DNA of 64,000 nt, from assembly GCA_051530055.1 (NCBI GenBank), contig CM121341.1, positions 15,602,784 through 15,666,783 of the forward strand. The letters run 5' to 3'. Numbering within the stretch: the first letter of the stretch is position 1; the number at the start of each line of letters is the position of its first letter. The DNA comes from Neoechinorhynchus agilis (lineage: Eukaryota; Animalia; Acanthocephala). This document shows, piece after piece, positions 1 through 54,426 of this stretch. The position numbers were made by a program, and so were the translations under genes. The notes under the pieces are model-generated. The model saw only the letters and a list, made by a program, of their open reading frames with translations, was not told the DNA's origin and did no database searches.

Positions 1-495
1 GACCAAATCACGACGAAGCAGAAATCGAGATATTGTTAAACGAAAACATAATCGAATCGAGCCAGTCTCCCAAAAGGGTAACGTAGTTTTTTCTACAAAT
101 AGCAAAGGAAAGTCACGACTGGCCAGACGGTAAATAGCTATACAGCATTAGATGCATACCCACTCCCTCGGATCGATGCTCTTGTCCAAACGGTTTCGAA
201 ATATAAATTCTATAACAAGGTAGATTTGAAGGCAGTATATCATCAACTTTAATTATAGTCTTTTTATTGCCTTCGAAGCAAATGGAAAATTATACCATTT
301 CCTCAGGGTACCATTCGGTCTCATTAACGGACCAGCAGTTTTTAAGTAAGCGATCGATCAGATTATATAAAATGCGAGCCAAGATGTTTTCGCGCATCTC
401 AATGATATCGTAGTTTGCGGAAACACCATTGAGGAACACGATGTTAATATGTATCGATTCCTAAATGTAACCAGAACAAGTGGAATAAATTGAGC
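1..495 (+). mobile_element. Ty3/Gypsy reverse transcriptase remnant (degenerate, runs off window start)
   Basis: Broken frames give IESSQSP, ALDAYPLPRIDALV, KVDLKAVYHQL, VPFGLINGPAVF and HLNDIVVCG (YxDD-like); several stops and frameshifts. Confidence 0.75.
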
Positions 496-714
496 TGATG
501 TGGGTCCTTTATTCCACTTTCACAACACGCTTACACTCAATGTTTTTGCAATTTAACATTCCAGTGGAAGGTGGCGAAGTGCCACCGCCAAATTCAATGC
601 CTCCAGATCCTCCAAATGAAGATGTGGGTGTTGTCGGCGAAGATAAAGGGGCTCCTGTCTCTCCTGTCGATAACGGCATGTCTGTTCGTCCTTCCAATTC
701 TCTTCGCATCTCCC

Positions 715-3175
715 TGCCCTCTGATCACATTTCCCTCCATTCTTTTCACTAACATAAGAAGTCTGTTACATAAAATAGATCATATTTCGCTTTTAGTCAC
801 TACCATCAACGCAGATTCCGACATCGCCTTGAACCTTGCTACACTTCTTTTCACTCTTACAGCGACGAACGCGTGGGAGGTGGTCTCCGTTTCATTCGGT
901 CCGACCTCCCTTACTCCTCTCCAATTCAACTCGTTACCAATCACCATACTTAGAGTACATCTGCATAACACTCGCCAAAACTTCGTTCAGGCCGCCGCAA
1001 TTTAACCATTATCGGTATTTATCGTTTTCCCTCAGTCAATCTACAAATGGCATCACAGGAGATTGATGCAATGATAGCAGATTTTCATTCTCTTGATCTT
1101 GAACATCTAATCATTCTTGGTGATGTCAATAATCTTCCTACATCACTATCTCTCCTTGACTTCGCAAAGTTAGCAAAATTTCCCACCCGCCAGAACTCAC
1201 ATCGTGATAAAATCTTTTCTAACTTCCACAAAGACAAGGGTGCTAAAAACTAATTCCAATCTCTTCCCCAGAACCATTGCGCAATAATCCTTTCTCCCTC
1301 CGCTCCTCCTCAACGTGTCCGGTCATCCTCCTTTACGGTCTGGGATAAGAGTGATCAACACATATTCACATTTACCAAATTAGTCTCGTGTAATCTATCT
1401 TCACACAGAAAATCTATTTTTCACCCGAAGTCCCCTTTGAAAATGCCCCAAATAAAAGCAATTAGTTTATACCACGCATGCTATCCTGATTTTCCTCGCC
1501 TTCAATCCACTCTTGCGCATCACATTCTCAATTCGCGCACGACCTTTCTTGCACATAAACTCGCATCCGGTTTGAAAACACGAAAAACGCCCTATGTATC
1601 GAAAGGCAAAACCCCTTCTCTAACTTCTCAAACTCCGACCTCATTGCTACACTAAATCCTATCAATGCGCAACTTTGTGGCTCTCACTCAGCTTCTATCG
1701 CTTGACCCCCAATGATTTCCACGTATGATATCCTCATGCTCCTTCGGAAACTACCACGCAAATCATCCTCTAACTCTCCCATTCCCAACTGGGCTCTACG
1801 CTTTATTATAGCAGATTTAATTGATCCATTTACCCATATAATCAACCAAAGTTTCAAGACCGGCATCTTACCTAATTGCCTTAAAACAGCTCGGGTAACC
1901 CAGCTCTCGAAAGCAGCTAAACTTATATCCACCTCAAGTTTTCGACCGCAGGTCTTCTGATGATCGGCATTAGAGAGATGTTTTAAAGCACACTTTCTGC
2001 CAATCTTCAATCGAAAAATTGCACTTATTCAATTCGGTTTCCATACCAAATTTTCTGCAACCGATGCCCTACTTTGCATTTATGACACGCTTCTACGTAA
2101 CCTCGAGACGTCACCCGTCTCATTCAACTGGACTTACCGAAAGCATTCGATTCCATGGACCATTCACTCCTTCTCCGGGCCTGCTCCGATTTTGCTCTCA
2201 AATTGTGACTGATCCGCTGGCTCGAATCTTATCTTCACAATCGCAAACAATACATTCACTGCCGTTCTACGCTTCGAATCCTTAAATCCGCAACAATTTA
2301 CCTTTATTGATATTCAGTACCACATCAACTGCAATTCCGCCATCCTTCCCGGTATTCTTCCTTCCATAAAGGCGTACCTCAAAGTGCCGTCCCGTCACCA
2401 CTTCTCGTTAGTATTTTCCTAAACGACCTCGAACCTCTCTCATCACACTCTAAGCTTCACTTATATGCAGACGATCTCACCCTCATCACCCAATCACCAT
2501 CCCACCTTTCCCTCTCCTTAACATCGAACGAAATCACACATAAACGATTTCTGCACCAATCACAGACTACCTCAACTTCTTTAAATGCTTCGAAACGGTC
2601 CCCTCAATCTCCCGCAGCCTCATATCCTACCCCGATCCTTAAATGGGACTCGCACATTACACTTTCCCTCAAGCGTAATAGCTTTACCATTTACTTCCTC
2701 AAACGCCTCCGCCATTTCGGATTCAAATCACACGCTCTCTCCGAATTTCACAACAGCAATATTTCACCCTCTCTCACCTTTGGTCATCTCGTCTTTTGCA
2801 ACCTGTCCACATCACAAACCCCGTCGCTTTAAAATGCTTCATAGAAAAGCTTCTAAAATTTGCACAGTTGATTTTCCTCAGGCTCACCGAATGCCTTTAT
2901 AAAAATTTCAAAAATCAATCAAAACGCCTCTTAACCTTGCCACCATAATTTTTACCACATTTTATTCCCCGTTCCAATTCCTTTCATCCTTCTATATCTC
3001 GCACCTCCTTCTACCACAGCTCCTTTTACAATAATGCCCAATCTTCTCAGATATCCTAACCGAGATGAATTGTAGGAAAGGTACAACCTAGCAAATTCCC
3101 CTATAAACATTAACCACATACTTTCCCACCCGACTGCATTCTCGAACAGCACAACTCCGCACGCCATTATTTAAT
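715..3175 (+). mobile_element. L2/CR1-like LINE ORF2 remnant (APE endonuclease + RT + 3' end)
   Basis: FPSILFTNIRSL (APE start), IILGDVN, DPFTHIINQSFKTGILP, VPQSAVPSPLL, LHLYADDLT and terminal FSNSTTPHAII; many frameshifts. Clade assignment is approximate. Confidence 0.8.
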
Positions 3176-3297
3176 CGCAAAAATATATGGTCTAAAAATT
3201 GTTATATGTCAACGCTAGTTATTATATCAATTGCAAATGTTCTAGAAATTGTAAAGAAATTATTCATTGTAGTTTCAGTTTCGCCAATTGAAACTGT

Positions 3298-4559
3298 TTT
3301 AGAAATCAAAAACGATTTTTAAGTTTGTTCCATTAACGCTTATTTGCCCAATTGATTTCATTTTTAAGAACGGGGCGTTAAATAGTACGAAAATTGGATT
3401 GTTTGACACGTCCAATAGTGTTGAACTTTTTAATTCAGACAGATCTTTCGAAGGTACCGAATGAAGTCCATTATTTGAAAGGCTAAGGAAAATTAAGTTG
3501 TTCAAACCACGAAAAGAATTTTCATTGTCCATATCGTTAAACTTGTTATGACTAAGATCCAACGCGATTAGTTTTCTCAAACGGGCAAAGGTGCCACGAA
3601 GTATGTTTTCGATTTGGTTGACTTAGAAATTTTAGGTCTCCGAGGCCGATAAAGTCATAACGATCAACATGTGAGATTTCGTTGTGGCTCATATCAATTG
3701 ATCTGACGGGCGTGTATCCATCAAAATCTATTGCGACAGCCTTAAATTTTCCCGTCCAGCTTTCAGAAAATATGACCTGCTTTGTATTGAACGCATCTTG
3801 ACTTGGCTTGAAAGCTATAAAGGATACCTATTAGCTTGAAGATATCGGCTAGATTACCCGAATTCGAAAATTCCACAGAGCGCATATTATCCTGTTAATA
3901 TAAAATGATTTAAGTGATTGCCATACACGCTGACTTCTTCAAGCTTTGTTAAGATTGAACCGTCACTGAATTTTGCATTCTCGATGAGATTGTTGGACAC
4001 ATCGAGAGTTTTCAAATTACCCATTTTTGCGATTATCTCAAAACTATCGTCCTTCAAACGATTGTTGGAAAGGATGAGAGTATGCAATTGCGGCAAATGG
4101 GCATTCATTCTTAAGCCTAGCCGGTATATCTCATTTTCCTTTAAATTAAGTTCCTCGAGATTGTGAAATCCCTGAAATGCGTCATCTTCGATCCTTTTTA
4201 TCAGCCCGTTTTGGATGCGAAGCTTTTTGAGATGTTTGAACCTTCTCATTACAGATTTGGTCAGAGTTGACAGTTCATTGCATTGTACGTCTGTCTTAAA
4301 AACGAACGCGTCATTGTGAGGAATAATAAAAGCCAAATCGATTGGAATCTCGTTCAAATGTGCACCTTCAACTATAATACATGATAAGGTCAATTAGCGG
4401 TGATCCGATAATTCCCGTTCCACAATAAATGAAAATTTTATAACCTTTGTTGGCACCGAACTGAGCACATTGATGTTCCACTTCGTCGCCATTGACCAAT
4501 GCAGATAGCAATAAATATGTTACCAATGTGCTCGACAAGAAGGAACGCGTCGAGAACAT
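3298..4559 (-). pseudogene. Secreted LRR protein, pseudogene copy A
   Basis: Near-identical to intact ORF 52255-54186, but has a 29-bp deletion at 4380/4381, an 8-bp deletion near 3621, a ~108-bp inversion (3722-3830) and a ~625-bp deletion. Confidence 0.9.
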
Positions 4560-5089
4560 TGCTCTTAGTTAAGAAGATTTCTTCAAAAATGCCCAGGTAC
4601 TTATGGTAATGGTATGAGGTGAGTAACTCCTTTAGCAATGCGTTATCTTTAGAATTCTAAGAAATACACGTTACTTTTTGTGAAGAACTCCGTAGTGGTA
4701 AATGAACCTACGATGTCAAAAAATTGTACAATCCGTCACGCCTTTTGAAACCTATGTAAATGATCAGTTGGTAGATTGTCGACTGATTTTTCAACGCATG
4801 TTATTCTTTTCGATTGCCCTTATTTAAGCAAGTTAAGCAATTTAGCTTGCTTTCAGTCGACAATTCACCAACTGTTCAACATGCAATTGAGCAAACCGAT
4901 TTTGGTCGACAAAAAATAAATTTATTTTCAATCGACAAACTTGCTCAAATAAGTCCAATCTTTGTAAATCAAGGATCGAATCGTGCTCGAAATTCGTATT
5001 ACTGTCCATTATGACCTGTCGTTTTATCCTGCATGACAAGTTGAAGAGTCTGCGAGTATAGCCAATTACGAAAACATTACGAACCAAGA

Positions 5090-5927
5090 AGCATTTATGC
5101 ACGATCAAGTCATTTCAAAACGGCAAGATAAGGCAATTGAGGATGTCAAAAATGCGCTGTCCAATGCTCAAGTACTCATACCGTACGATGGCAAGAGTCC
5201 AATACGCTTCATGTGCGGCGCTTGCGAAAAGGGTCTAGGTGCTATTTTACTTCAGAAAGATACCGAAGAAGAGTGCAGACCGGTCGCTTATTGCTCGAGG
5301 ACTCTCCGACCAGCCGAACAAAAGTTTACCCAGATTGAACGTGAAGCATTGGCACTGGTGTACAGCGTGACAAAGTTTAATTTTTACCTGATGGGACGCG
5401 CCTTCACGTTGGTGAGTGACCATAAACCCTTACAATTAATTTTCGGAGAAAATCGGAACTTAAAAAAGACTTCAAACCACAGACTATTACGCTGGGCGAT
5501 TGTCTTGTCCCAGTACAATTATCAGTTAGTTCACATTGACGGTAAGAAAAATGCAATGGCAGACGTACTATCGAGGTTTAGTTCAAGAACGGGAGACAGT
5601 CCAAAAAGTATTGACCTCAAAGAAACGACGCAAAATGAAATATCTGAGGTCTTGACATTATCATTGCAATCTTTGAAAATCGCAACTGGAACAGACTCCG
5701 AATTATGTATGGTGAGAAAGTATGTCGAAACGAATTGGCCCAACAAGATCCTCAGCGCGTTTCATCTTTATACGGCAACAAATTGCACGATACGTCATCA
5801 GCCAATCGACTCATCAATTTTACCCAGATCTTCTCATTGTTAAATGCATTGGATCAAATGGAATCCAACATGGACGAGTTACACCCTGCCATCCTAAGTC
5901 AAATGGACTGGCAGAACGGATGGTGCG
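5090..5927 (+). mobile_element. Ty3/Gypsy RNase H and integrase remnant
   Basis: GLGAILLQ, RPVAYCSRTL, YSxIEREALA-like FTQIEREALALV, LVSDHKPL, HIDGKKNAMADVLSR, then PCHPKSNGLAERMVR. Confidence 0.9.
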
Positions 5928-6055
5928 TGTGATATTGAGCGTCGCAATCGACCGATCGATAGTTGCGGTTTCAAGTGTGCGCACGTTCGTTTTGTTATTT
6001 CGTTTCGTTGGCTCAATAAAACCTAGTTCAGGTCTAGTTCAGGCATATATTATAA
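5928..6055 (+). mobile_element. Short LTR (~130 bp), 3' CA missing
   Basis: Starts TGTGATATTGAG and has AATAAA ~30 nt before its end. The sister copy at 56822-56951 has complete TG...CA termini. Confidence 0.7.
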
Positions 6056-6489
6056 AAACCCCGATCTCACAAAATCCGCCCAATCCAATATTGTTTATCG
6101 CTCAAATTACGATTACCCTATCTTCATCGTAAACAATGCCACAAAGAGGACCCAAAGGTACATGAGTCCAACTCTTGTTATCTAACAAACAAATAAACGT
6201 GTTATTATTATAAGGTGTTTATCATAGTAGATTTTGCGGCTTACGAGTTATAGATGACGTTTTTCATATCAGCCTACTAATCTGACTTAAATTTGTACTT
6301 CTCGCCTTTCCTCAATTCACTCATAAAATGCACGTCCACTTAGCAAAGCTTTTTAATTTAAAACTATTTAGTTGTATAGTCGGAGCTGAAAGGCTCGACG
6401 ACATTATGATCAACTTCTCAAAATGTTTGTATTTCTAGTGCCCACATCAAAAAATTAAAAAAAGCAACTATTGACCCCGTTTCGTTCAT

Positions 6490-7581
6490 TTACCGCTTAG
6501 CCACCCGTTTGCTTCGTCTAAAATTATTGCACTAAGCTATTAAGAATTCGCGAGCAATCATTGTCTTACCTTTTTCTTGGCTTTCGTTTTAGCACTTTAG
6601 TCACCACCGCCATTTTTCGTCTTTGAAGCTCCTTATGCTTCTCATGCAGCAAATCGTTATCCACCTCTAGAGTCCGAAGACATCCGCTCACTTCTTGAAA
6701 AGTTCTGTAATCAAATCGGGAAAGCTTTTCCGCGTTCCTAAGGCGAAGTGTCTTCAATTTTCTACGAATAAGTCGTTCATCTCTTTTATCTTCCTCATTC
6801 TCGATCTCCGAACAAATTTGCTTTATCCTATTCAGGTCAGCAAGGTTTTTCTTTGCTATCTTTTCTCGTTCATGCCTCCTCATCTCCAATAACGCCAACC
6901 TTCTTCGGAATTTCTTCTTTTCCGTCTTCGGTTTCGGTCTTGGTTTTGCCTGCTGTACCTCAGTTGTCTCTCCTTAACTCGAGTCTCCTTCCAGTTCCTT
7001 CTTATTAGTCGTACGGTCCAACCCTTCCCTCATTTCTTCAACAAACGTTTCCCAACTTCTCTGTTTCATCTTTTTGGACCATTTCCGAACTCTCTCCAAC
7101 TCTTTCTCAGCCTTTAATTCCTTCCGACCGATCCTACTTAAATAATTGTGGTTCAATACCGCATCAGGATTATAAGAAAATCCATCGTGCATGCGTACGT
7201 CGCCTTCTTCGATGATGAACCACCATTTTCCGAGAACGAAAATGCACAAAGTGGTCCATTACCTTTTAATTTCAATTTATCGGAAAATCTTTTCAAAACT
7301 TTCGATGACTTGCTTTGCCACAAGTCACATTTGGCAGATGCGATTCCAGCGAGCAGTTTTCTACTGGTTGGCTTGAATTTGGGCATTACGGGTCGCGGAA
7401 CTGTAGTAATTAATGGCACCTGAACTGCCAATGACTTCTCCTGCGCCACAAAATCTGGCACTTCAATCTTACGCCGGTTCTTACGACGATGCTTCACTAA
7501 TTTCTGCTTCATTGAATTCAAATTCTGAAAGGTTTTTATTAGAGGAAGAAACATATTTTGTTGGAAAGACACCAATGCCAC
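6490..7581 (-). pseudogene. NOP53: NOP53 duplicate, pseudogene
   Basis: Copy of 19002-20111 with a GAA>TAA nonsense change (6974-6976) and an 18-bp in-frame deletion near 7356. Confidence 0.8.
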
Positions 7582-8759: not shown

Positions 8760-9130
8760 ATGTTCAAAGGCACGGTAGAAGGTGATGTTTCGAGGTTAGC
8801 GTCGATCGCGGTCGAAAGTGCCCTGTTGACAAGTCCAAAAGGCATTCCAAACGGTATTCGATCTGGTGCAAATTTGATCAGCAGCTTGGCGCAGCCGAAC
8901 CCACAGATAAAGAACGGGCAAGGCTCTGGGATGTGCGTTGGGGCGATGAGGGTTGTTATCGAACACCCTTAGCACGAGCAGGTGCTCCTATTAGAGGCAG
9001 GGTTACGGGACTTTTACCAGCCATGAAGGTGAGCGCGGCGATGAAGATTTAATTGTATCGCCAATTGTTTTCGACTTTGGAGGACGTTCACGCGAGAGAG
9101 GATAATGATTCATAGTGTACCACATGACTG
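8760..9130 (-). mobile_element. Ty3/Gypsy RT remnant
   Basis: Minus strand gives SSPRSPSWLVK (SPW-like) and FGMPFGLVN; highly decayed. Confidence 0.4.
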
Positions 9131-9329
9131 TAATAGCGTTCCATCATCAAGGGGGGTATACTCAAGTTCTCTTTTACAGCTCTGGTTGCTAAGCTCTCCA
9201 GCTTTATTCTATAGTTTAGTCTACTTGGAGCAGTATACGGAACAAAGTTGGGACCAAAGCTTAGGATTTCCAGTACTTCACTAGGAAGTACAAAGTTCGA
9301 AATATTTTTACGACATCCTTAGTATGATC

Positions 9330-10560
9330 CGATGGAAGGAAAAACCTCCCATGTGTGAGACGACTAATTTTCCGACACTGACGGTTGTAGATGAATTTTG
9401 AATTGAATGCTGCGAAGAGCGAGATTTTAGTGATGAACGTGGAACCCCCGGGATAGAGCTGATGACTTTAGACCGGTTGAGTCTTCTAGGAAGTTGCATT
9501 TTTGGTTCTAATGTCGAAGCAGCGATTGCCAATCTTCAACCGCAACTTTCGGTACTGTGCGAACGAGTTGATGAATTATCTTCACATGAGGCTCTTTTCC
9601 TGATCAAGAACACCATTTTCATTCCAAAACTGCACCTTTTTAGACATAAAGATAAGCCGGCAAAATTAGACGAGACGGTGATAGCCTATCTCGAGAAAAC
9701 TTTAAATACTCAGCTGCAACACAAGGCCTGGCGTCAAGCGTCCTTGCCTTTATCGTCCGACGGTTTGGGTATCCGCAAAGCAGCTGATATTTCTCTGCCA
9801 GCTTATTTGGGATCGTATGAAGCAGGTCGCTTAGTAGTTAAATCCGTTCTGTGCGAGAATTACACTTTGGATGAAGATTTCATGGAGGCGCTTAATCTTT
9901 GGTGTGGAGATTCAGGCAGCGAACAGGTAGCCGTGCGTGACGAGACAGTAAGGATTGCACTGAGGCTTGGGGTACCGATGTGCACATCCCATCGCTGCCG
10001 TTGCGGAGCGACCGCCATGGTATCGTCCTTCGGCAATCAGGCGAATGGTACTCACGCTATTCCGAAATGAACGCAATTGTTAGTCGTGTCCTGAATACTG
10101 TGAATGCGCCCAACATCCTAGAGCCTAGCAATATTTGCCGACTCGATGGCCGTAGGCCGGACGGTGTCCCAGCATTCCCGTGGGGATAAATAAAATGCCT
10201 TCTCTGGGACGCCACGTTCGTGGACACGCTCGCAACCAGGGGGAGTTGCAACCGCCGCGAACGCAAAAGGACAAAATACAGGGACCTGAGTCGGAATCAT
10301 TATTTTGTTCCCTTTAGTGTCGAGACGCTCGGGTCATTTGGTACTGCGGCACAGGACCGTGTTAAGCAATTGTCTAAGAGATTGAGATGAATCACTGGCG
10401 ATCAGAGGGCAGGAGCATTCCTTCTGTAAAACATAAGTCTGGCTGTGCAACGAGGGAACACTGCATCAGTCCTTTCGACCGTTACACCAGGACGGCAGAT
10501 GAGTGATCCAGAGCGGTGATGTGAGGTAATCAAAGTAAAATAATAAAGCAACTAGGTTTG
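9330..10560 (+). mobile_element. CRE-like (RLE-type) non-LTR retrotransposon, 3' part
   Basis: LSLLGSCIFG, WRQASLPLSSDGLGIRKA, IALRLGVPMCTSHRCRCG (CCHC), RLDGRRPDG..FPWG (PD-D/ExK endonuclease) and SLAVQRGNTASVL; frameshifts and stops. Confidence 0.8.
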
Positions 10561-11477
10561 GAAAAAAATAATAAATTATTTTTATTCCGCATTGGAGTCC
10601 ATGAATATTTTAATTTTCTACAATTTTTCAAAATAGACATCGACCTCATTTTGAATATCATAGAGTGTTTGCCCATTTAAATAATATTCTGAGATGTAAG
10701 CGTTTCTTCTTCAAAGACGATCCTCAACGAACGTGTTGCTTTCAAACCTCAGGTCTTACTACTGTCGCCGAGCTTTTTTCCTGGCAAATCAAAAAATGGT
10801 GAAAAAGTTAACTTCTGGGATTCACCTATCAGTGTATGCGGTAAATATAACGGTGCTCATCATTCAAATGACGGTCCCTATTTCGATTAATTGTAATCGA
10901 TTTTTTACTAGGGATTTCAACGATTTGACTTGCCAGGCGGTGAGACCAGCATGTATCAAGGAGAAGATTTTGATCGATGGAGTCAAATGCTTTATGAATG
11001 TCGACTTGGATGAGTCGAGAGATAAATAAAAGACGTGCATCGAGATTATGAAGAAGAGAATCGAAGATAAGAAAAGCCTGACCAGAAACTGAATTGAATG
11101 GGTGAAATTTTTCGATTGAAGATTGGCAGAAGGTGTGCTTTAAAGCATCTAGAAAAGGAATTTAGACATTTTGTAAAATATTCCTCGCCTTGATGGAAGA
11201 CAATATCTTAGAAGAAATTTCAATCTTGGCGAAAAGCAGCAATCGCCTGGATAAAATCTGTATATTTTTATGAGGTTATTTATGCAATGTGCTCAGAACG
11301 CTTTCTAGGTTTCATTTTAAACGTCAGTAGCATAGATTTCCTTCCCATCAAAGACCGTCGCTTTGACCTAAAGGCCCAATAAGCTCTGAACGGTTTCTAT
11401 GGGAAGCAACCACTCGATAATAAAGAATATTTTTCTTAACGAATAGATGAGCTTTATTAATTATGCTGCTTCGTTCC

Positions 11478-12026
11478 TTAACCTTTCTTTTTGGATCTTT
11501 GCTTTCCGAAAGTAAAGAGTCCGACAATCGCTGCTCCCAATAATCCAGCGGCTCCAAATGTAAGTGCGGTAGTAGATAGTTCACGAAATTTCATTTCTTC
11601 GATTTCATTTTTAAGCTCAATTGCGTCCTTGTTTTGAGGATTGATTTCGAGAATGGAATCAACTAATCGGATGGCTTTCTCCGGAAATCCGAGTTTAGCT
11701 TCAGCGATTGCCATGTAGAGCAAATACTTACCAGTTAAACTGTCATCATGACTTTCATTATATAATGAACGAATGAGTTCATTTCCCCGTTTGATTAGTT
11801 CAGGTTTCTTTTTCGGTTGAAGAATAAGGGCAGAAGCGTAGTTGAACGTCGCGGATGATCCAGCTAAACCATTGTAACGATGCAACTCCTCTTCGTAAGC
11901 CGCCTTAAATGACCGAAAAGTCAAATCGTCAATTTCACAGTCCAAACGCTGAAGCATCCGTGATTCTAGACTTATTTCCGCGTATGAACTGCAATCACAT
12001 TTCTTCCGGCGAATAAGCGTCATCAC
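11478..12026 (-). CDS. FIS1: Mitochondrial fission protein 1 (probable start ATG 11957)
   Basis: TFNYASALI, TPR-like YLLYMAIAEAKLG...VDSILEINPQNKDAIEL, C-terminal TM (FGAAGLLGAAIVGLF) and basic tail KQRSKKKG. Confidence 0.85.
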   Translation of the reverse strand: MMTLIRRKKCDCSSYAEISLESRMLQRLDCEIDDLTFRSFKAAYEEELHRYNGLAGSSATFNYASALILQPKKKPELIKRGNELIRSLYNESHDDSLTGKYLLYMAIAEAKLGFPEKAIRLVDSILEINPQNKDAIELKNEIEEMKFRELSTTALTFGAAGLLGAAIVGLFTFGKQRSKKKG

Positions 12027-12284
12027 AACTGAAATGGGAATTATGGTTTCTCGTATAAAAAGTCCAGCAGCACAATCGAGTAATTATTTTTTTCAAAAGC
12101 TAACTTTGGATAGCTCACTTAGGCCTGCTGTATAATTCCCAGTCGATATCTACGAGCAAATGATTTCGTATTTCAAGGAACTAAATATAGGAAATATTTT
12201 CTGCTCGCGTGGCACCATTTTATTAATCATCTCGTCTATTTCAATTTTCATACGTAAAAGCCACCTATATACATTCCGATGTGT

Positions 12285-14050
12285 AACCCAACCACGTCAC
12301 CGTGCAGTCGCCATCACGTTAGCAGCATTGCCTCGTTGAACTGCAATCGAGATATTTTGTCGCAGGAATACACCTGTTCGTGCGTCGCCGGTCGTTTCTC
12401 TCAATTTCTTCGAGAGATCCTGGGGCAGAGTGAGCGCCGAGCTGCCAAGCGTTCCATACGTCTCTACCCCAAAGGGGACAAAATAGTGAGCCCTCGATAA
12501 CTGAATATATTTGTGTATTTTCCTCCCTTCCGCTGCACTGAATGCACCTTCAGCGATTTTCAGTACGGAATGTTGCTTACTGCCGCGAGTGTCCACATGG
12601 GACCCAGAGAAGGCATTAGCCCTCCCGCCACGGAAAGACCGAAATTCCGTTAGGTCGACGACCATTTAGTCGACAAAGATGGGTGGGTTCCAAGATGCTG
12701 GGGAAGTTCGTCGTTCTCAACGCCCGAGAAATTATACTATTTATCTCAGAATGGCGTGAGAACCTTCCTCCTGACTTTAGGCAAACGAGACCGTGTCGCC
12801 CGAAAGCATCAACCAAAGACCCGCCTCGACAGCGATAGGGCGTGCATATCGGGAGACTTAGTCTTAAGGACACTGCGATCCTCGTTACCTTATCAGTAAG
12901 AAGAGTTCCCACTGGTGCCAGAGGAACAGCCTCCAGCCATGCCCCGATTCTCGTGTCGAAACTGCCAACAATCTAGCTCGGACGACCCCATCGCGAGAAC
13001 CTGAAAGTAGAGAGCTCTAGCGACCAGAGGTCTGTTCCAGATAGACTGTCTGAGGCCATTCACGGGAACATGGTTTGCGCCCGTCTGCTAGCACCATTCT
13101 TCAACTGCCACCACAGTCTTGGTCAAGACAAAACTTTTCCCTCAGAATTTTCTGCGCTATCGGTTGACTCCCCTCATACGATCCAAGGAAGGCTGGTCCC
13201 CAGATGACGCAGGTAATGAAGCTTGCCGCCACGCCTCATCTGAGAGCTGGACATTTAAAATACGCTCGAGACAAGCCCTCACCTCGTCGTCGAGCTTAGC
13301 CAATCCTTCCTTTATGTTTGAAGAATGTTGCTGTGCGGATCTTATATAACAATTTCGGGATAAAGAGTGCGTTCTTTATCAGAAATAACGCTTCGTGAGC
13401 TGAGAGAGCGCTCACCCTATCGCACAGCAACGAAAGTTTCGGCACGATACGGCCGATCTCAGCTTCCACATTTGAATCAAAGACGCAACTACCCAGGAAG
13501 CTGAATTGCTCTGGAGTCACGAGTTTCAGACCTGGAGCTACGGCCTCGAACCCATCAATTTGCTCCTTGACTTTGGCGGCGTCTTCGATATTTAAAACTA
13601 GAAGCTCACACTTTCCAGCATTGAGCTCAATGCTTATCTTCGAGGTCTCCCTAACCAGCGTCTCTAAATCGCGCTGTACAACGGAGGGATCACCTTCGAG
13701 CGTAGCGTCATCCAAGTACCGAGCGTTGAAGATGGAATGGAGAGAGTGCGCTATTGGATTTACTGTTAGGGAGAATGCGATTGGACCTAGAGGATCTCCT
13801 TGCTGCACTCCTCTTTCGGACCAAATGAGGTGGTCTTCGAAGAGCAAAGGAGTCGCGGTCCAGTAGGCATTGAGAAAATACTGGAAGGCTTCTTGTGCTT
13901 GATCCCTAATTGCGCTGAACTTGCTTTCTCTATTGAGAGAGTTAAAGGCGCTCTGAAAATCACACTTAAGAATCAGGCACGGCTCTGAATTCCTGGTAGT
14001 AAAGTTTCGGAGCGCGTGGACAATAGCTTCCGTCCCGTCCGAGAAATTAC
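12285..14050 (-). mobile_element. CRE-like non-LTR retrotransposon (RT domain, CCHC, RLE), 5'-truncated
   Basis: GTEAIVHA, KCDFQSAFNS, GVQQGDPLGP, RYLDD, GAWLEAVP, LRLSLPICTPYRC...HGLVC...RHSEIN, RRPNG..FPWREG, VPFGVETYG and IAVQRGNA; frameshifts after 13296. Confidence 0.88.
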
Positions 14051-15700
14051 GGGTGATTGCCGATTTATGCATACCAGCGTATATCCCCGCTTTCATCGCC
14101 CAAGGATGGTGAGAATCTCGGTGCATCACAGTCCACTTCCTGCATGGCTTTCGATACCAATTGAAGTTGGATACATCGTCGGATTTTAAGCGGAGATTGA
14201 GGAATGGCAGGTAGTCCGAAGGTTGGTCTCTCGTAACCCGAATCCTCCTATTCGAGTCCATTGAATTTAATAGTGACTCAATGGTATCGACCTCATCATC
14301 CTCGGTGAAGGTCAGCAACACATCGTCCACATAGCGGAGGTAAACTTGACTCGACGCTAAATGTGGATAGATGTGCTGTCTTTCCAGGTCATCGAGGTAG
14401 AGGATGGCCAATACCGGAGCTAAACTATTTCCCATTGCAAGACCACGAACTTGCTTATATAGCTGGTTTCGATAACGAATAAGGTTGCACTTTAGTACCA
14501 ATCGTGTCAGACCAATAACATCGAATGGAAGTAGACCGAAGAGGTCAAGATCCTCATTCTCCTTCAACCTTTTCTCCAGCGCACGTACTGCTCCCTCGTT
14601 GTCCACATTGGTGTACAATGCTACGAAATCAAAAGACATTACGCGACTGTTGGTCAATTCATTCTGTCGCGATCGCAGGATTGATAACAGCTCATCAGTA
14701 TTGCTCACAAATGCCCGTGTCCTCCGTAGCAATGGACCGATAGCCGAAGCCAGGAAACGAGAAACACGGTACGCTGGTCCATTAACCGCAGATATGATTG
14801 GTCTGCATTTCAGCAATGAGGCTGCTTGCGGTGTAATCGGAACAATAGGCATCTTGTGTGTCTTGACCAATCCGTACATCACCGGCGTACGTAATGGTCC
14901 GTGTGTGAAACTGCTCACCCCTTTCAACTCTCTAGCCGAAATCACTTTTCGAAGAGCAGCATTCAACTCCTTGCGCTGTTGCTCGCATTCGTCTTTTGTC
15001 GCCATTGTATATGTATCAGTGTGACCCAATAACGTCCCCATCATCGCACTTTCCACGCTGTTTTCCATCGCCACGAGATCACCTCCCTTATCGCTCACTG
15101 TTATCCTCATCTCCTTCTTTTGCACTTTCTCTTTCAGAGACCTCAGTGCTCGTCGTTCACTCAACGGAAGATTCGGTTTCGAGCGGTAATCCATATAACG
15201 ATCCGTCAAGTTTTCTATGCCCTATCGCAACATCTACAATTTTCTCTCTGTGTGATCATCAGCTCTCGGTACTGCGAATACATTCCTTTCGAAATCAAAA
15301 TGCGGTCGAGATCGCGAGACACACTCAGGTTCACAACTAGGCGGTGCATTAGCCTCTGCAGCAACCAGACGTTCCCCATCACGAACAGCTTTTACCCGTA
15401 GTTGGTACGCTAAGCGCGCGACGTCCACTTGCAATTGGAATACATCCTCTTTCCTCAGTGTATGTGTCGGCGCAAAGGACGGTCCACGTGAGAGAACCAT
15501 ACGTTCATCTCTATTCAACATTCCATCCGGAATGCACGTCATCCGGTCGGTGAGTAGGACTTGACTCCTCGGTCGGCTCGGATCGACCTTCGATTCGCAT
15601 AACGCGGCATATTTCCCTTTCATTCGATCTTTGGAACACGAAAATTCCTCCTTTCCCAACACTTCTGACAAATACTGCTTACATATATCGAGATCGTTCC
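14051..15700 (-). mobile_element. Penelope-like element: N-terminal region and RT, no GIY-YIG
   Basis: LSRGPSFAPT, ITVSDKGG, YGLVKTHK, CRPIIS, SFDFVALYTNV, GLAMGNSLAP, YLRYVDD, LPFLNL, WYRKP and SHHP; two in-frame TAG at 15236-34 and 15224-22. Confidence 0.88.
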
Positions 15701-17071
15701 TCGCAATAGATTTTGGAATTTCATCGATTCGCTGCGTCGTATCCATTTTTGCCCTTATAGCTCGAATCTTGTCGTACGCTGCAGTCGAAATACTGTTATT
15801 AAACATCTCCATATATCCCACTCGGTTTTTGCCATTTTTATTAATTACTAGTTCGCCAACATGGTTTTTCGCTATTGACAAATAACCAATATGTGGAAGA
15901 TTTTCAATTAATTCGGGATTGAACGATTCCAAATAATTTTCAGCCAACAATAACACCTTTAGATTGACATTATTTTTGAAGAGGTTTTGTGGTAGGTCAT
16001 TGATTCTGTTTCCGCTTAGAAAGAGAGATGTTAATTCTCTTAAGTTCCACAATGCCTCTTCATCAATCACTTCGATGTCATTGTACGACAAATCAAGTTT
16101 CCTAAGACTTTGCCAATGGTATAGGTCGTTCGAACGCAACGCGGAAATTCGATTGCCCTTAAAGTTAAGCGATACCATGTTTGCTCTTGTAAACGAATTA
16201 CCTTTTGGAACATTTTTCCAAATTCGCTTCCAAAATACCAAAGTGCTGAATATTCGGTGTCATTTCTAGCATACGAGAGTTGATAAAGCTGGTAGTTCCA
16301 CCGTGAAGCATAAGCTTGCACAGCTTGAGAAAGCTACAATTTTGCTTGATGAAATCTGCTAGATCACCAGAATTCGAAAATTCCAAAGAGCGCATATTAT
16401 CCGGTTTAATATAAAATGATTTAACTGGATTGCCATACACGCTGACTTCCTCAAGCTTTGTTAAGATTGAACCATCACTGAATTTTGCATTCTCGATGAG
16501 ATTGTTGGACACATCGAGAGTTTTCAAATTACTCATTTTTGCGATTATCTCAAAGTTATCGTCCTTCAAGCGATTGTTGGAAAGGATGAGAGTATGCAAT
16601 TGCGGCAAATGGACATTCATTCTTAAGCCTAGCCGGTATATCTCATTTTCCTTTAAATTAAGTTCCTCGAGATTGCGAAATCCCTGAAATGCGTCATCTT
16701 CGATCTTTTTTATCAGCCCGTTTTGGATGCGAAGCTTTTTGAGATGTTTGAACCTTCTCATCGCAGATTTGGTCAGAGTTGACAGTTCATTGTATTGTAC
16801 GTCTGGCTTAAAAACGAACGCGTCATTGTGAGGAATAATAAAAGCCAAATCGATTGGAATCTCGTTCAAATGTGCACCTTCAACTATAATACATGATAAG
16901 GTCAATTAGCGGTGATCCGATAATTCCCGTTCCACAATAAATGAAAATTTTATAACCTTTGTTGGCACCGAACTGAGCACATTGATGTTCCACTTCGTCG
17001 CCATTGACCAATGCAGATAGCAATAAATATGTTACCAATGTGCTCGACAAGAAGGAACGCGTCGAGAACAT
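15701..17071 (-). pseudogene. Secreted LRR protein, copy B (5' two-thirds, fused to Penelope ORF)
   Basis: Matches 54186 down to 52788. Carries the same 29-bp deletion as copy A (16892/16893) and a +1 insertion near 16215. In-frame junction EIPKSIA|RNDLD. Confidence 0.9.
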
Positions 17072-17601
17072 TGCTCTTAGTTAAGAAGATTTCTTCAAAA
17101 ATGCCCAGGTACTTATGGTAATGGTATGAGGTGAGTAACTCCTTTAGCAATGCGTTATCTTTAGAATTCTAAGAAATACACGTTACTTTTTGTGAAGAAC
17201 TCCGTAGTGGTAAATGAACCTACGATGTCAAAAAATTGTACAATCCGTCACGCCTTTTGAAACCTATGTAAATGATCAGTTGGTAGATTGTCGACTGATT
17301 TTTCAACGCATGTTATTCTTTTCGATTGCCCTTATTTAAGCAAGTTAAGCAATTTAGCTTGCTTTCAGTCGACAATTCACCAACTGTTCAACATGCAATT
17401 GAGCAAACCGATTTTGGTCGACAAAAAATAAATTTATTTTCAATCGACAAACTTGCTCAAATAAGTCCAATCTTTGTAAATCAAGGATCGAATCGTGCTC
17501 GAAATTCGTATTACTGTCCATTATGACCTGTCGTTTTATCCTGCATGACAAGTTGAAGAGTCTGCGAGTATAGCCAATTACGAAAACATTACGAACCAAG
17601 A

Positions 17602-18439
17602 AGCATTTATGCACGATCAAGTCATTTCAAAACGGCAAGATAAGGCAATTGAGGATGTCAAAAATGCGCTGTCCAATGCTCAAGTACTCATACCGTACGA
17701 TGGCAAGAGTCCAATACGCTTCATGTGCGGCGCTTGCGAAAAGGGTCTAGGTGCTATTTTACTTCAGAAAGATACCGAAGAAGAGTGCAGACCGGTCGCT
17801 TATTGCTCGAGGACTCTCCGACCAGCCGAACAAAAGTTTACCCAGATTGAACGTGAAGCATTGGCACTGGTGTACAGCGTGACAAAGTTTAATTTTTACC
17901 TGATGGGACGCGCCTTCACGTTGGTGAGTGACCATAAACCCTTACAATTAATTTTCGGAGAAAATCGGAACTTAAAAAAGACTTCAAACCACAGACTATT
18001 ACGCTGGGCGATTGTCTTGTCCCAGTACAATTATCAGTTAGTTCACATTGACGGTAAGAAAAATGCAATGGCAGACGTACTATCGAGGTTTAGTTCAAGA
18101 ACGGGAGACAGTCCAAAAAGTATTGACCTCAAAGAAACGACGCAAAATGAAATATCTGAGGTCTTGACATTATCATTGCAATCTTTGAAAATCGCAACTG
18201 GAACAGACTCCGAATTATGTATGGTGAGAAAGTATGTCGAAACGAATTGGCCCAACAAGATCCTCAGCGCGTTTCATCTTTATACGGCAACAAATTGCAC
18301 GATACGTCATCAGCCAATCGACTCATCAATTTTACCCAGATCTTCTCATTGTTAAATGCATTGGATCAAATGGAATCCAACATGGACGAGTTACACCCTG
18401 CCATCCTAAGTCAAATGGACTGGCAGAACGGATGGTGCG
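17602..18439 (+). mobile_element. Ty3/Gypsy RNase H and integrase remnant (duplicate)
   Basis: Translation identical to 5097-5843 and 5722-6132. Confidence 0.9.
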
Positions 18440-18567
18440 TGTGATATTGAGCGTCGCAATCGACCGATCGATAGTTGCGGTTTCAAGTGTGCGCACGTTC
18501 GTTTTGTTATTTCGTTTCGTTGGCTCAATAAAACCTAGTTCAGGTCTAGTTCAGGCATATATTATAA
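18440..18567 (+). mobile_element. Short LTR (duplicate of 5928-6055)
   Basis: Identical to 5928-6055 and preceded by GTGCG. Confidence 0.7.
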
Positions 18568-19001
18568 AAACCCCGATCTCACAAAATCCGCCCAATCCAA
18601 TATTGTTTATCGCTCAAATTACGATTACCCTATCTTCATCGTAAACAATGCCACAAAGAGGACCCAAAGGTACATGAGTCCAACTCTTGTTATCTAACAA
18701 ACAAATAAACGTGTTATTATTATAAGGTGTTTATCATAGTAGATTTTGCGGCTTACGAGTTATAGATGACGTTTTTCATATCAGCCTACTAATCTGACTT
18801 AAATTTGTACTTCTCGCCTTTCCTCAATTCACTCATAAAATGCACGTCCACTTAGCAAAGCTTTTTAATTTAAAACTATTTAGTTGTATAGTCGGAGCTG
18901 AAAGGCTCGACGACATTATGATCAACTTCTCAAAATGTTTGTATTTCTAGTGCCCACATCAAAAAATTAAAAAAAGCAACTATTGACCCCGTTTCGTTCA
19001 T

Positions 19002-20111
19002 TTACCGCTTAGCCACCCGTTTGCTTCGTCTAAAATTATTGCACTAAGCTATTAAGAATTCGCGAGCAATCATTGTCTTACCTTTTTCTTGGCTTTCGTT
19101 TCAGCACTTTAGTCACCACCACCATTTTTCGTCTTTGAAGCTCCTCATGCTTCTCATGCAGCAAATCGTTATCCACCTCTAGAGTCCGAAGACATCCGCT
19201 CACTTCTTGAGAAGTTCTGTAATCAAATGGGGAAAGCTTTTCCGCGTTCCTAAGGCGAAGTGTCTTCAATTTTCTACGAATAAGTCGTTCATCTCTTTTA
19301 TCTTCCTCATTCTCGATCTCCGAACAAATTTGCTTTATCTTATTCAGGTCAGCAAGGTTTTTCTTGGCTATCTTTTCTCGTTCATGCCTCCTCATCTCCA
19401 ATAACGCCAACCTTCTTCGGAATTTCTTCTTTTCCGTCTTCGGTTTCGGTCTTGGTTTTACCTGCTGTACCTCAGTTGTCTCTCCTTCACTCGAGTCTCC
19501 TTCCAGTTCTTTCTTATTAGTCGTACTGTCCAACCCTTCCCTCATTTCTTCAACAAACGTTTCCCAACTTCTCTGTTTCATCTTTTTGGACCATTTCCGA
19601 ACTCTCTCCAACTCTTTCTCAGCCTTAAATTCCTTCCGACCGATCCTACTTAAATAATTGTGGTTCAATACCGCATCAGGATTATAAGAAAATCCATCGT
19701 GCATGCGTACGTCGCCTTCTTCGATGATGAACCACCATTTTCCGAGAACGAAAATGCACAAAGTGGTCCATTACCTTTTAATTTCAATTTATCGGAAAAT
19801 CTTTTCAAAACTTTCGATGACTTGCTTTGCCACAAGTCACATTTGGCAGATGCGATTCCAGCGAGCTGTTTTGTACGCATGGGAAGTTTTCTACTGGTTG
19901 GCTTGAATTTGGGCATTACAGGTCGCCGAACTGTAGCAATTAATGGCACCTGAACTGCCAATGACTTCTCCTGCGCTACAAAATCTGGCACTTCAATCTT
20001 ACGCCAGTTCTTACGACGATGCTTCACTAATTTCTGCTTCATTGAATTCAAAGTCTGAAAGGTTTTTATTAGAGGAAGAAACATATTTTGTTGGAAAGAC
20101 ACCAATGCCAC
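19002..20111 (-). CDS. NOP53: Ribosome biogenesis protein NOP53/GLTSCR2 (start ATG 20111 or 20042)
   Basis: KHRRKNWRKIEV (cf. yeast KKAWRKNID), CDLW, GFSYNP and SGCLRTLEVDNDLLHEKHEELQRRKM. Predicted intron 19081-19030 (GTAAGA..TTAG) gives the end RRSKRVAKR*. A probable ~56-nt intron near 19776-19721 joins the two frames. Confidence 0.8.
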
Positions 20112-52254: not shown

Positions 52255-54186
52255 TTAGAAATCAAAAACGATTTTTAAGTTTGTTCCATTAACGTTTATT
52301 TGCAAAATTGATTTCATTTTGAAGAACGGGGCGTTAAATAGTACGAAAATTGGATTGTTTGACACGTCCAATAGTGTTAAACTTTTTAATTCAGACAGAT
52401 CTTTCGAAGGTACCGAATGAAGTCCATTATTTGAAAGGCTAAGGAAAATTAAGTTGTTCAAACCACGAAAAGAATTTTCATTGTCCATATCGTTAAGCTT
52501 GTTATGACTAAGATCCAACGCGATCAGTTTTCTCAAACGGGCAAAGGTGCCACGAAGTATGTTTTCGATTTGGTTGAATTGAAGGCTTAGAAATTTTAGG
52601 TCTCCGAGACCGATAAAGTCATTACGATCAACATGTGAGATTTCGTTGTGGCTCATATCAATTGATCTGACGGCCGTGTATCCATCAAAATTATAGATAT
52701 CCTTTATAGCTTTCAAGCCAAGTGAGGATGCGTTCAATACAAAGCAGGTCATATTTTCTGAAGGTTGCACAGGAAAATTTAAGGCTGTCGCAATAGATTT
52801 TGGAATTTCATCAATTCGCTGCGTCATATCCATTTTTGCCCTTATAGCTCGAACCTTGTCGTACGTTGCAGTCGAAATGCTGTTATTAAACATCTCCATA
52901 TATCCCACTCGGTTTTTGCCATTTTTATTAATTACTAGTTCGCCAACATGGTTTTCCGCTATTGACAAATAACCAATATGTGGAAGATTTTCAATTAATT
53001 CGGGATTGAACGATTCCAAATAATTTTCAGCCAACAATAACACCTTTAGATTGACATTATTTTTGAAGAGGTTTTGTGGTAGGTCATTGATTCTGTTTCC
53101 GCTTAGAAAGAGAGATGTTAATTCTCTTAAGTTCCACAATGCCTCTTCATCAATCACTTCGATGTCATTGTACGACAAATCAAGTTTCCTAAGACTTTGC
53201 CAATGGTATAGGTCGTTCGAACGCAACGCGGAAATTCGATTGCCCTTAAAGTTAAGCGATACCATGTTTGCTCTTGTAAACGAATTACCTTTTGGAACAT
53301 TTTGCAAATTCGCTTCCAAAATACCAAAGTGCTGAATATTCGGTGCCATTTCTAGCATACGAGAGTTGATAAAGCTGGTAGTTCCACCGTGAAGCATAAG
53401 CTTGCACAGCTTGAGAAAGCTACAATTTTGCTTGAAGAAATCTGCTAGATCACCAGAATTCGAAAATTCCAAAGAGCGCATATTATCCGGTTTAATATAA
53501 AATGATTTAAGTGGATTGCCATACACGCTGACTTCCTCAAGCTTTGTTAAGATTGAACCATCACTGAATTTTGCATTCTCGATGAGATTGTTGGACACAT
53601 CGAGAGTTTTCAAATTACTCATTTTTGCGATTATCTCAAAGCTATCGTCCTTCAAACGATTGTTGGAAAGGATGAGAGTATGCAATTGCGGCAAATGGGC
53701 ATTCATTCTTAAGCCTAGCCGGTATATCTCATTTTCCTTTAAATTAAGTTCCTCGAGATTGTGAAATCCCTGAAATGCGTCATCTTCGATCCTTTTTATC
53801 AGTCCGTTTTGGATGCGAAGCTTTTTGAGATGTTTGAACCTTCTCATCGCAGATTTGGTCAGAGTTGACAGTTCATTGTATTGTACGTCTGGCTTAAAAA
53901 CGAACGCGTCATTGTGAGGAATAATAAAAGCCAAATCGATTGGAATCTCGTTCAAATGTGCACCTTCAACTATAATACTGTTAGCTTTGGGCTTCTCTCT
54001 TACACACATGATCAGGTCAATTAGCGGTGATCCGATAATTCCCGTTCCACAATAAATGAAAATTTTATAACCTTTGTTGGCACCGAACTGAGCACATTGA
54101 TGTTCCACTTCGTCGCCATTGACCAATGCAGATAGCAACAAATATGTTACCAATGTGCCCGACAAGAAGGAACGCGTCGAGAACAT
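52255..54186 (-). CDS. Intact intronless secreted leucine-rich-repeat protein, 643 aa
   Basis: Hydrophobic N-terminal signal-like peptide, two blocks of LxxLxLxxN repeats (LEELNLKENEI, LRKLDLSYNDI, LKFLSLQFNQI) separated by a Cys-containing linker; no TM or TIR. Confidence 0.88.
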   Translation of the reverse strand: MFSTRSFLSGTLVTYLLLSALVNGDEVEHQCAQFGANKGYKIFIYCGTGIIGSPLIDLIMCVREKPKANSIIVEGAHLNEIPIDLAFIIPHNDAFVFKPDVQYNELSTLTKSAMRRFKHLKKLRIQNGLIKRIEDDAFQGFHNLEELNLKENEIYRLGLRMNAHLPQLHTLILSNNRLKDDSFEIIAKMSNLKTLDVSNNLIENAKFSDGSILTKLEEVSVYGNPLKSFYIKPDNMRSLEFSNSGDLADFFKQNCSFLKLCKLMLHGGTTSFINSRMLEMAPNIQHFGILEANLQNVPKGNSFTRANMVSLNFKGNRISALRSNDLYHWQSLRKLDLSYNDIEVIDEEALWNLRELTSLFLSGNRINDLPQNLFKNNVNLKVLLLAENYLESFNPELIENLPHIGYLSIAENHVGELVINKNGKNRVGYMEMFNNSISTATYDKVRAIRAKMDMTQRIDEIPKSIATALNFPVQPSENMTCFVLNASSLGLKAIKDIYNFDGYTAVRSIDMSHNEISHVDRNDFIGLGDLKFLSLQFNQIENILRGTFARLRKLIALDLSHNKLNDMDNENSFRGLNNLIFLSLSNNGLHSVPSKDLSELKSLTLLDVSNNPIFVLFNAPFFKMKSILQINVNGTNLKIVFDF

Positions 54187-54426
54187 TGCACTTAGTTAAG
54201 AAGATTTCTTCAAAAATGCCCAGGTACTTATGGTAATGGTATGAGGTGAGTAACTCCTTTAGCAATGCGTTATCTTTAGAATTCTAAGAAATACACGTTA
54301 CTTTTTGTGAAGAACTCCGTAGTGGTAAATGAACCTACGATGTCAAAAAATTGTACAATCCGTCACGCATTTTGAAACCTATGTAAATGATCAGTTGGTA
54401 GATTGTCGACTGATTTTTCAACGCAT

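Follow-up and report, generated by a model that had tools for sequence, protein, structure and literature searches.

A 637-codon frame spanning two reverse transcriptases, probably a chance join of retrotransposon fragments

Within the genome assembly of the acanthocephalan Neoechinorhynchus agilis (GCA_051530055.1), a stretch of 64,000 nucleotides from contig CM121341.1 (positions 15,602,784 to 15,666,783; referred to here as the window) contains an open reading frame (ORF) of 637 codons that encodes parts of two different reverse transcriptases (RTs). The first belongs to a Penelope-like element (PLE), and the second to an R2-like long interspersed nuclear element (LINE) of the type that carries a restriction-like endonuclease (RLE). 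This ORF is very probably a dead, single-copy, chance in-frame join of two unrelated retrotransposon fragments, brought together by rearrangement at the DNA level. The first-pass annotation of this DNA had offered a chance in-frame insertion or deletion as one of its explanations, and this is supported: the junction is single-copy, and elsewhere both families run through the breakpoint. The frame and the pieces that it joins are as follows.

13296..15209, minus strand: open frame of 637 codons, with a TTG start and a TAA stop, passing from PLE RT through filler to partial LINE RT
14052..15702, minus strand: PLE fragment, positions 257-1952 of the 2,912-nt family unit (reference L036:3484-6395)
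14038..14051, minus strand: 14-nt filler between PLE and LINE, CGTAATTTCTCGGA, the first 13 nt being LINE RLE-region sequence
13313..14037, minus strand: LINE segment N1, RT motifs 3-7, no frame disruption, 92-94% identical to its nearest relatives
12304..13312, minus strand: LINE segment N2, 3' third of the LINE, containing what remains of CCHC and RLE, with several frameshifts

Copy number of the junction and the expected rate of chance fusions

Searches at the genome level covered the window's own 46.2-Mb assembly. A 401-nt probe centred on the junction had only itself as a full-length match; its 24 PLE-side copies all cease matching at 14052, and its LINE-side copies all begin matching at 14033-14038. 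Past the breakpoint, each of the 24 other PLE copies carries one common continuation, the linker and GIY-YIG nuclease of an 861-aa ORF, and all five LINE copies that were read across the breakpoint carry a common upstream sequence of their own. Both of these continuations are missing from the window. A 34-nt junction pattern, with up to three mismatches allowed, occurs once in the 46.2 Mb. A junction that is single-copy and untranscribed is what the first-pass annotation had named as the mark of an accidental fusion, and in copy number the junction in this assembly agrees with it.

These counts bear directly on the other explanation in that annotation, a genuine composite retroelement in which a PLE took a LINE module of RT, CCHC, and RLE in place of GIY-YIG and moves as a unit. 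Such an element would explain why the pieces are co-oriented and joined in frame, and why an RLE lies downstream of the position expected for GIY-YIG. Copy number has already refuted it for this assembly, where both the BLAST-type search and the 34-nt pattern return one junction. Both RTs are also truncated, the RLE is frameshifted and its conserved RPDG reads RPNG, there are stops upstream of the frame and a TTG at its start, no terminal features or target-site duplications are seen, and the LINE 3' part is older at this locus than the PLE. The database relatives described below likewise include no two-half protein among those listed. We therefore regard a mobile composite as having next to no probability.

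The whole 637-aa frame was used in a word-indexed search of 5.8 billion proteins, in which 8,000 candidates were scored and 125 hits obtained, 120 of which were listed. Among these 120 of 125 there is no database protein that spans both halves. The majority of PLE-type hits extend over 52-64% of the query, the majority of LINE-type hits over 34-40%; both classes have shorter partial matches too, and the maximum coverage among the matches listed is 64%.

In a first look at the 46 Mb, LINE-RT candidates numbered at least 1534 and PLE candidates at least 596, or roughly one LINE RT fragment every 30 kb and one PLE fragment every 80 kb. Since both families are dense, abutting fragments are expected, and a handful of abutting, co-oriented PLE/LINE fragments would be predicted per genome, with a probability of 1 in 3 that any such join is in frame. 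The DNA divergence from nearest relatives is 2.6-3.3% for the PLE half and 6-8% for the LINE RT segment. Pairwise dN/dS among copies is 0.3-0.7, so that much of this divergence arose between active lineages and not by decay after insertion, and for this reason the ages of the two halves can only be roughly ordered. Because both halves are little diverged from intact ORFs (identity to relatives is 96.7-97.4% for the PLE half and 86-94% for the LINE), it is unremarkable that each side has a few hundred codons free of stops, and an open frame of 637 codons would not be beyond chance. A separate locus (L017, G000:C1:3026544-3029742) has a copy of the PLE family and a fragment of the LINE family within ∼1 kb, and illustrates how often the two families neighbour each other.

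The first 13 nt of the 14-nt filler are family-typical sequence from the RLE region of the same LINE, ∼1.3 kb further 3'. The 13-mer occurs 168 times in the genome, against one occurrence of a reversed control, and the chance of the filler matching the two reference elements was estimated at ∼4e-4. With 13 of its 14 nt matching the RLE region and 168 genomic copies against one for the control, the filler is LINE-derived. End joining with LINE sequence as template could have produced it as a patch; alternatively it could be what is left of a 5' duplication of the LINE, or the product of a template jump by an RT.

The join was also considered as an assembly artefact, in which the contig wrongly connects a PLE copy with a LINE copy. 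The neighbourhood contains tandem paralogues with tracts that are 100% identical, and assemblers are known to have trouble with arrays of PLEs (PMC8557442). At the join, however, the two sides lack the shared homology at which assemblers tend to switch; a 14-nt filler lies there instead, as is typical when ends are joined biologically, and both flanks are collinear with paralogous loci. A misjoin is accordingly rated as very improbable.

The frame and the two families from which it is drawn

The uninterrupted ORF of 637 aa reported in the first-pass annotation is present in the ORF listing, and all of the motifs that were read from it can be found in the translation: YGLVKTHK, SFDFVALYTNV, GLAMGNSLAP, YVDD, and HHP, followed by CDFQSAFNS, GVQQGDPLGP, and YLDD. 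That annotation had asked for the halves to be scanned separately, and when this is done each matches Pfam RVT_1 on its own. The N half (residues 1-385, 385 aa) matches profile positions 43-172 with 30.1 bits and E 5e-7, and the C half (residues 392-637, 246 aa) matches profile positions 54-202 with 55.2 bits and E 1e-14. The break had been placed near 14050, which is right to within one codon, as PLE homology stops at 14052 and LINE homology runs from 14037. Of what was described as a ‘full Penelope-type RT’, the RT core is present; the window copy ends at about residue 597 of 861 and the C-terminal part of the ORF is gone. Similarly, the C half was rightly recognized as a LINE RT and is incomplete, with motifs 0, 1, 2, and 2a missing. 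The frameshifted CCHC and RLE that had been reported downstream do exist as ORFs, and can be listed with two further lesions of the locus.

12297..12912, minus strand: remnants of a CCHC zinc knuckle and a PD-(D/E)xK endonuclease, frameshifted (ORFs 12616-12912 and 12297-12665)
15222..15236, minus strand: a pair of TAG stops in the PLE reading frame (15236-15234 and 15224-15222), breaking this ORF a short way upstream of the 637-codon frame
15636..15639, minus strand: private 45-nt in-frame deletion in the window PLE copy (47 nt in other copies, 2 nt in the window)

The limits of the frame are those of a damaged sequence. At the two TAG positions intact PLE copies encode L and E, and the frame opens at a TTG directly 3' of these stops. 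Because the TTG follows two in-frame TAGs, the frame is a fragment of a dead ORF with no gene start of its own. At its other end, a 1-nt frameshift in the LINE at 13312/13313 leads to the stop 14 nt later. No activity is expected from the product, since it would combine a PLE RT core that has no C-terminal region or nuclease with a LINE RT that has no motifs 0-2a; judged by these missing parts, the fused protein is predicted to be inactive.

The full unit of the PLE family is ∼2,912 nt and has a single ORF of 861 aa (L036). The N half of the frame finds its best database matches among RT proteins, at 33-37% identity and with E values down to 4e-56, several of which carry GIY-YIG (PF01541). The 861-aa ORF is collinear with one database protein (P0123, E 4e-47), which has GIY-YIG at its C-terminus (27.6 bits against a cutoff of 22.6). 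A direct match of the L036 ORF itself to GIY-YIG is weak (E 0.011, below the cutoff), as are those of two other relatives at the same position. The assignment of the N half to PLEs is thus borne out by its RT similarity and by the alignment of the family ORF to P0123, and GIY-YIG at the C-terminus, following the RT, is found at the level of the family. It is the window copy that has no such region. This copy is without the 5' 256 nt of the unit and ∼960 nt at the 3' end, comprising the linker and GIY-YIG, and it therefore lacks the last ∼265 aa of the ORF. The private 45-nt gap was examined as a spliced intron, which would mark an RNA intermediate, and this was rejected because no GT-AG pair recreates the window sequence; it looks like a plain in-frame deletion.

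Other copies of the family are arranged in ways that have been described for PLEs, in which partial tandems (pseudo-LTRs, that is, direct repeats resembling long terminal repeats) and 5' truncations are documented (PMC8557442). At one locus (L038) the 3'-terminal 554 nt is repeated directly upstream of a full unit, in a pseudo-LTR arrangement, and inverted or tandem partial copies are present at several loci. Copies begin at residues 1, 19, 54, 104 and so on to 330, and all reach one downstream point, forming a ladder of 5' truncations. Scans for a hammerhead ribozyme gave no Rfam match in two full PLE loci at the gathering score, or in one unit at E ≤ 1. Some PLE clades are without canonical hammerheads (PMC8557442), and so this result does not exclude membership of the group.

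Among the matches listed, the nearest PLE relatives are mostly from strongylid nematodes (Haemonchus, Necator, and Ancylostoma), at 33-37% identity, and rotifers contribute few; this taxonomic pattern would be odd if the host is a syndermatan. A segment of the PLE has also become part of a tandem array elsewhere in the genome (G000:C2:1177888-1182416), where each unit, with a period of ∼725 nt, holds a ∼187-nt PLE segment that corresponds to window 15560-15702 at 74% identity.

For the LINE family, a near-full-length copy encodes a single ORF of 1179 aa with N-terminal Cys/His motifs, RT, CCHC, and PD-(D/E)xK endonuclease. In an alignment with 35 relatives, the columns Cys/His, RH..N, E-P, RPDG, WD.TC, and E..K...Y are invariant or close to it (90% or more) within the C-terminal 300 residues. 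A profile of the family is collinear with R2 proteins from the RT almost to the C-terminus (E 3e-24). An AlphaFold (AF2) model of the C-terminal domain (pLDDT 92) was compared with known structures by Foldseek, which placed R2 structures first (E 3e-6) and PD-(D/E)xK nucleases next. On these grounds the C half comes from an RLE-type, R2-like LINE. RLE-bearing LINEs fall into the CRE, R2, R4, NeSL, and HERO groups (PMC4640811). The first-pass label ‘CRE’ holds only as far as an RLE-type, R2-like LINE, as the relatives returned carry no clade names. Lepidoptera, a tardigrade, and environmental assemblies supply the closest of them, unnamed proteins with 40-46% identity.

Copies of this LINE are commonly 5'-truncated. 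Around 40 have a common 3' end and differing flanks, the only flank in common being that of a tandem paralogue of the window locus, and the family is dispersed and not site-specific. The window copy starts at about residue 573 of 1179, just before RT motif 3/A, with the first ∼572 residues gone. Its N2 segment has a 1-nt insertion at the 5' edge, a 34-nt deletion, and additional frameshifts. In the near-full-length copy (L044:6500-7052, minus strand) the ORF opens with ∼18 tandem units of seven residues (MPPPPST/TPPPPST); it is locally out of register at RT motifs 1-2, and the 1179-aa frame may not be functional.

The duplicated neighbourhood and the order of events

The history of the join can be read in part from its flanks. 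Upstream, in the orientation of the frame, the PLE abuts a truncated gene encoding leucine-rich repeats (LRR).

15703..17311, minus strand: truncated copy of an LRR gene forming the upstream flank, with homology to four paralogues that ends at 15701

The LRR-PLE join has 2 nt of microhomology (GA) and the remainder of the LRR gene is missing; the continuation of the LRR paralogues past 15701 is absent from window 9000-18500. Downstream, the LINE 3' end (∼12304) is followed by a Fis1-like gene. The locus, termed dupB, has a tandem paralogue, dupA (G000:C1:15595001-15608771, comprising L031, L035, and window 1-6500), 12-17 kb away. The paralogue has window 9191-13312 and 16341-19012 in common with dupB, the LINE 3' junction and the 34-nt internal deletion among them. 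It does not contain the PLE: the LRR breakpoint site is uninterrupted there, within a 110-bp inverted piece, and LRR-downstream sequence is kept.

Two conclusions follow from this comparison. The 3' part of the LINE predates the duplication, because its 3' junction is common to both duplicates, and a 5'-truncated fragment of the R2-like LINE thus sat beside the Fis1-like gene before the local tandem duplication took place. The PLE copy is younger: it is present in one duplicate only, is truncated at both ends, and lies inside the LRR gene, abutting the LINE via the filler. As the LINE 3' part predates the duplication and the PLE junction is specific to the window copy, chimeric retrotransposition in one step is excluded.

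A simple nested insertion was also considered and rejected. The remainder of the PLE 3' part was sought across the whole 64-kb window and not found, and there is no LINE 5' part upstream of the PLE.

Two routes would lead to the arrangement that is seen. By one, the PLE would have inserted into the LRR gene in the normal way, after which a deletion of several kb may have taken out the 3' end of the PLE together with the remainder of the LRR gene and all DNA as far as, or into, the LINE. By the other, a fragment of PLE cDNA would have been captured during repair of such a break. In each case the join would have stayed in frame by luck (1 in 3).

The alternative that deserves most attention is a patchwork made by an RT during break repair or abortive retrotransposition. 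The resident LINE 3' end would have primed an RT on LINE RNA to give 13313-14037; the enzyme would then have jumped to another part of LINE RNA, giving the 13-nt filler, and next to PLE RNA, giving 14052-15702, before ligation to the LRR gene. Template jumping is known for R2-type RTs (Bibillo and Eickbush, as cited in PMC7650587), and tripartite chimeras arising from double jumps have been described for a LINE of Magnaporthe (PMC2104539). The locus is compatible with such events in several respects: all three pieces are co-oriented, the filler is LINE-derived, and 13313-14037 contains no frame disruption, in contrast with several in 12304-13312, the boundary between the two being a 1-nt irregularity exactly where the dupA LINE fragment ends.

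Other features of the locus argue against an RT-made patchwork. In its plain form, a chimera made in one step by target-primed reverse transcription is excluded, given a LINE 3' junction that predates the dupA/dupB duplication and a PLE that is in dupB only. No target-site duplication is seen around the chimera, and its two flanks are not contiguous in the paralogues. The PLE piece begins at unit position 257, which is no demonstrated RNA 5' end. The two LINE segments are both nearest to one relative (L047) and diverge from the young subfamily to a similar extent (89.1% and 88.2% identity), as fits one original contiguous insertion. The dupA boundary, on which the argument for a later addition leans, lies at an upstream junction that is itself a rearrangement when compared with a third paralogue. 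Taken together, these points make an origin by template switching unlikely, although it is the more credible of the rivals considered here. If true, it would mean that the locus records, in nature, the copying of a PLE transcript by an R2-like RT, with two template switches, one of them onto PLE RNA.

Joining by DNA-level rearrangement, the reading that we prefer, has its own difficulties. In dupA the LINE fragment stops at 13312, exactly where the window carries an additional A that the family does not have; the shorter fragment and the extra base could mean that 13313-14037 was added later, together with the PLE. A filler copied from the LINE would also fit an RT-mediated origin. Identity between dupA and dupB is 100% over 11133-11882 and over 12923-13072, with 99.3% in the 150-nt windows adjoining the latter (12773-13222), and only 85-95% over 12033-12772. 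This mosaic suggests either recent gene conversion between old duplicates or cross-polishing of the consensus during assembly, and gene conversion would blur the dating of events. The third paralogue provides no empty site for the LINE fragment. The dupA boundary, the rearrangement of dupA, and the mosaic identity allow more than one order of events. Under either a deletion or an RT-made patch, the fusion is a one-off accident.

Several further observations concern the genes and duplicates around the join. The truncated LRR gene (window 15234-16905, minus strand) reads in frame into the first ∼155 PLE codons until the first TAG; this read-through, the ORF at 15234-16241, makes two in-frame fusions by chance at one locus. 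Paralogues of the LRR gene are found at window 52788-54426, window 3831-6500 (partial), C1:15689182, C1:18528156, and C2:3815351. In dupA, a 110-bp LRR piece (window 3722-3831, equivalent to window 52693-52802) is inverted and replaces ∼730 bp, a small inversion-deletion scar. The exon of the Fis1-like gene (window 11478-12026, minus strand) matches Fis1_TPR_C (E 8e-8), has a C-terminal hydrophobic tail, and has a 100% identical duplicate in dupA.

Significance and comparison with known systems

The locus amounts to transposon debris of an ordinary kind, in which a frame is open by chance. A true hybrid of PLE and LINE with two RTs, or an exchange of GIY-YIG for RLE, would bear on the swapping of nucleases in retroelements, which is not the case here. 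What the locus does show is the ease with which long, clean-looking chimeric ORFs arise amid young PLE and LINE copies. For similar findings, the first test should be the copy number of the junction and whether relatives run through the breakpoint. Mildly useful by-products are the LINE-templated filler and an account of two families of this genome, one of dispersed R2-like LINEs and one of PLEs with GIY-YIG.

Compared with the template-switch chimeras of the Magnaporthe LINE (PMC2104539), the locus is alike in its co-oriented, head-to-tail pieces, with the LINE 3' part last and a short piece between. It differs in having no target-site duplication, an older LINE 3' junction, a single occurrence, and a PLE as 5' partner without a demonstrated RNA 5' end. 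The PLE family differs from canonical (EN+) Penelope-like elements in that no hammerhead ribozyme was detected in it by the Rfam scan, and the window copy differs in being truncated at both ends, without GIY-YIG, and carrying two stops and a 45-nt deletion. The family nevertheless resembles them in its single ORF with RT followed by GIY-YIG, its pseudo-LTRs, and its ladder of 5' truncations. The LINE family, unlike most CRE, R2, R4, and NeSL elements, is dispersed and has no single target, and it shares with RLE-encoding non-LTR retrotransposons a single ORF, Cys/His motifs, RT, CCHC, a PD-(D/E)xK endonuclease, and frequent 5' truncation.

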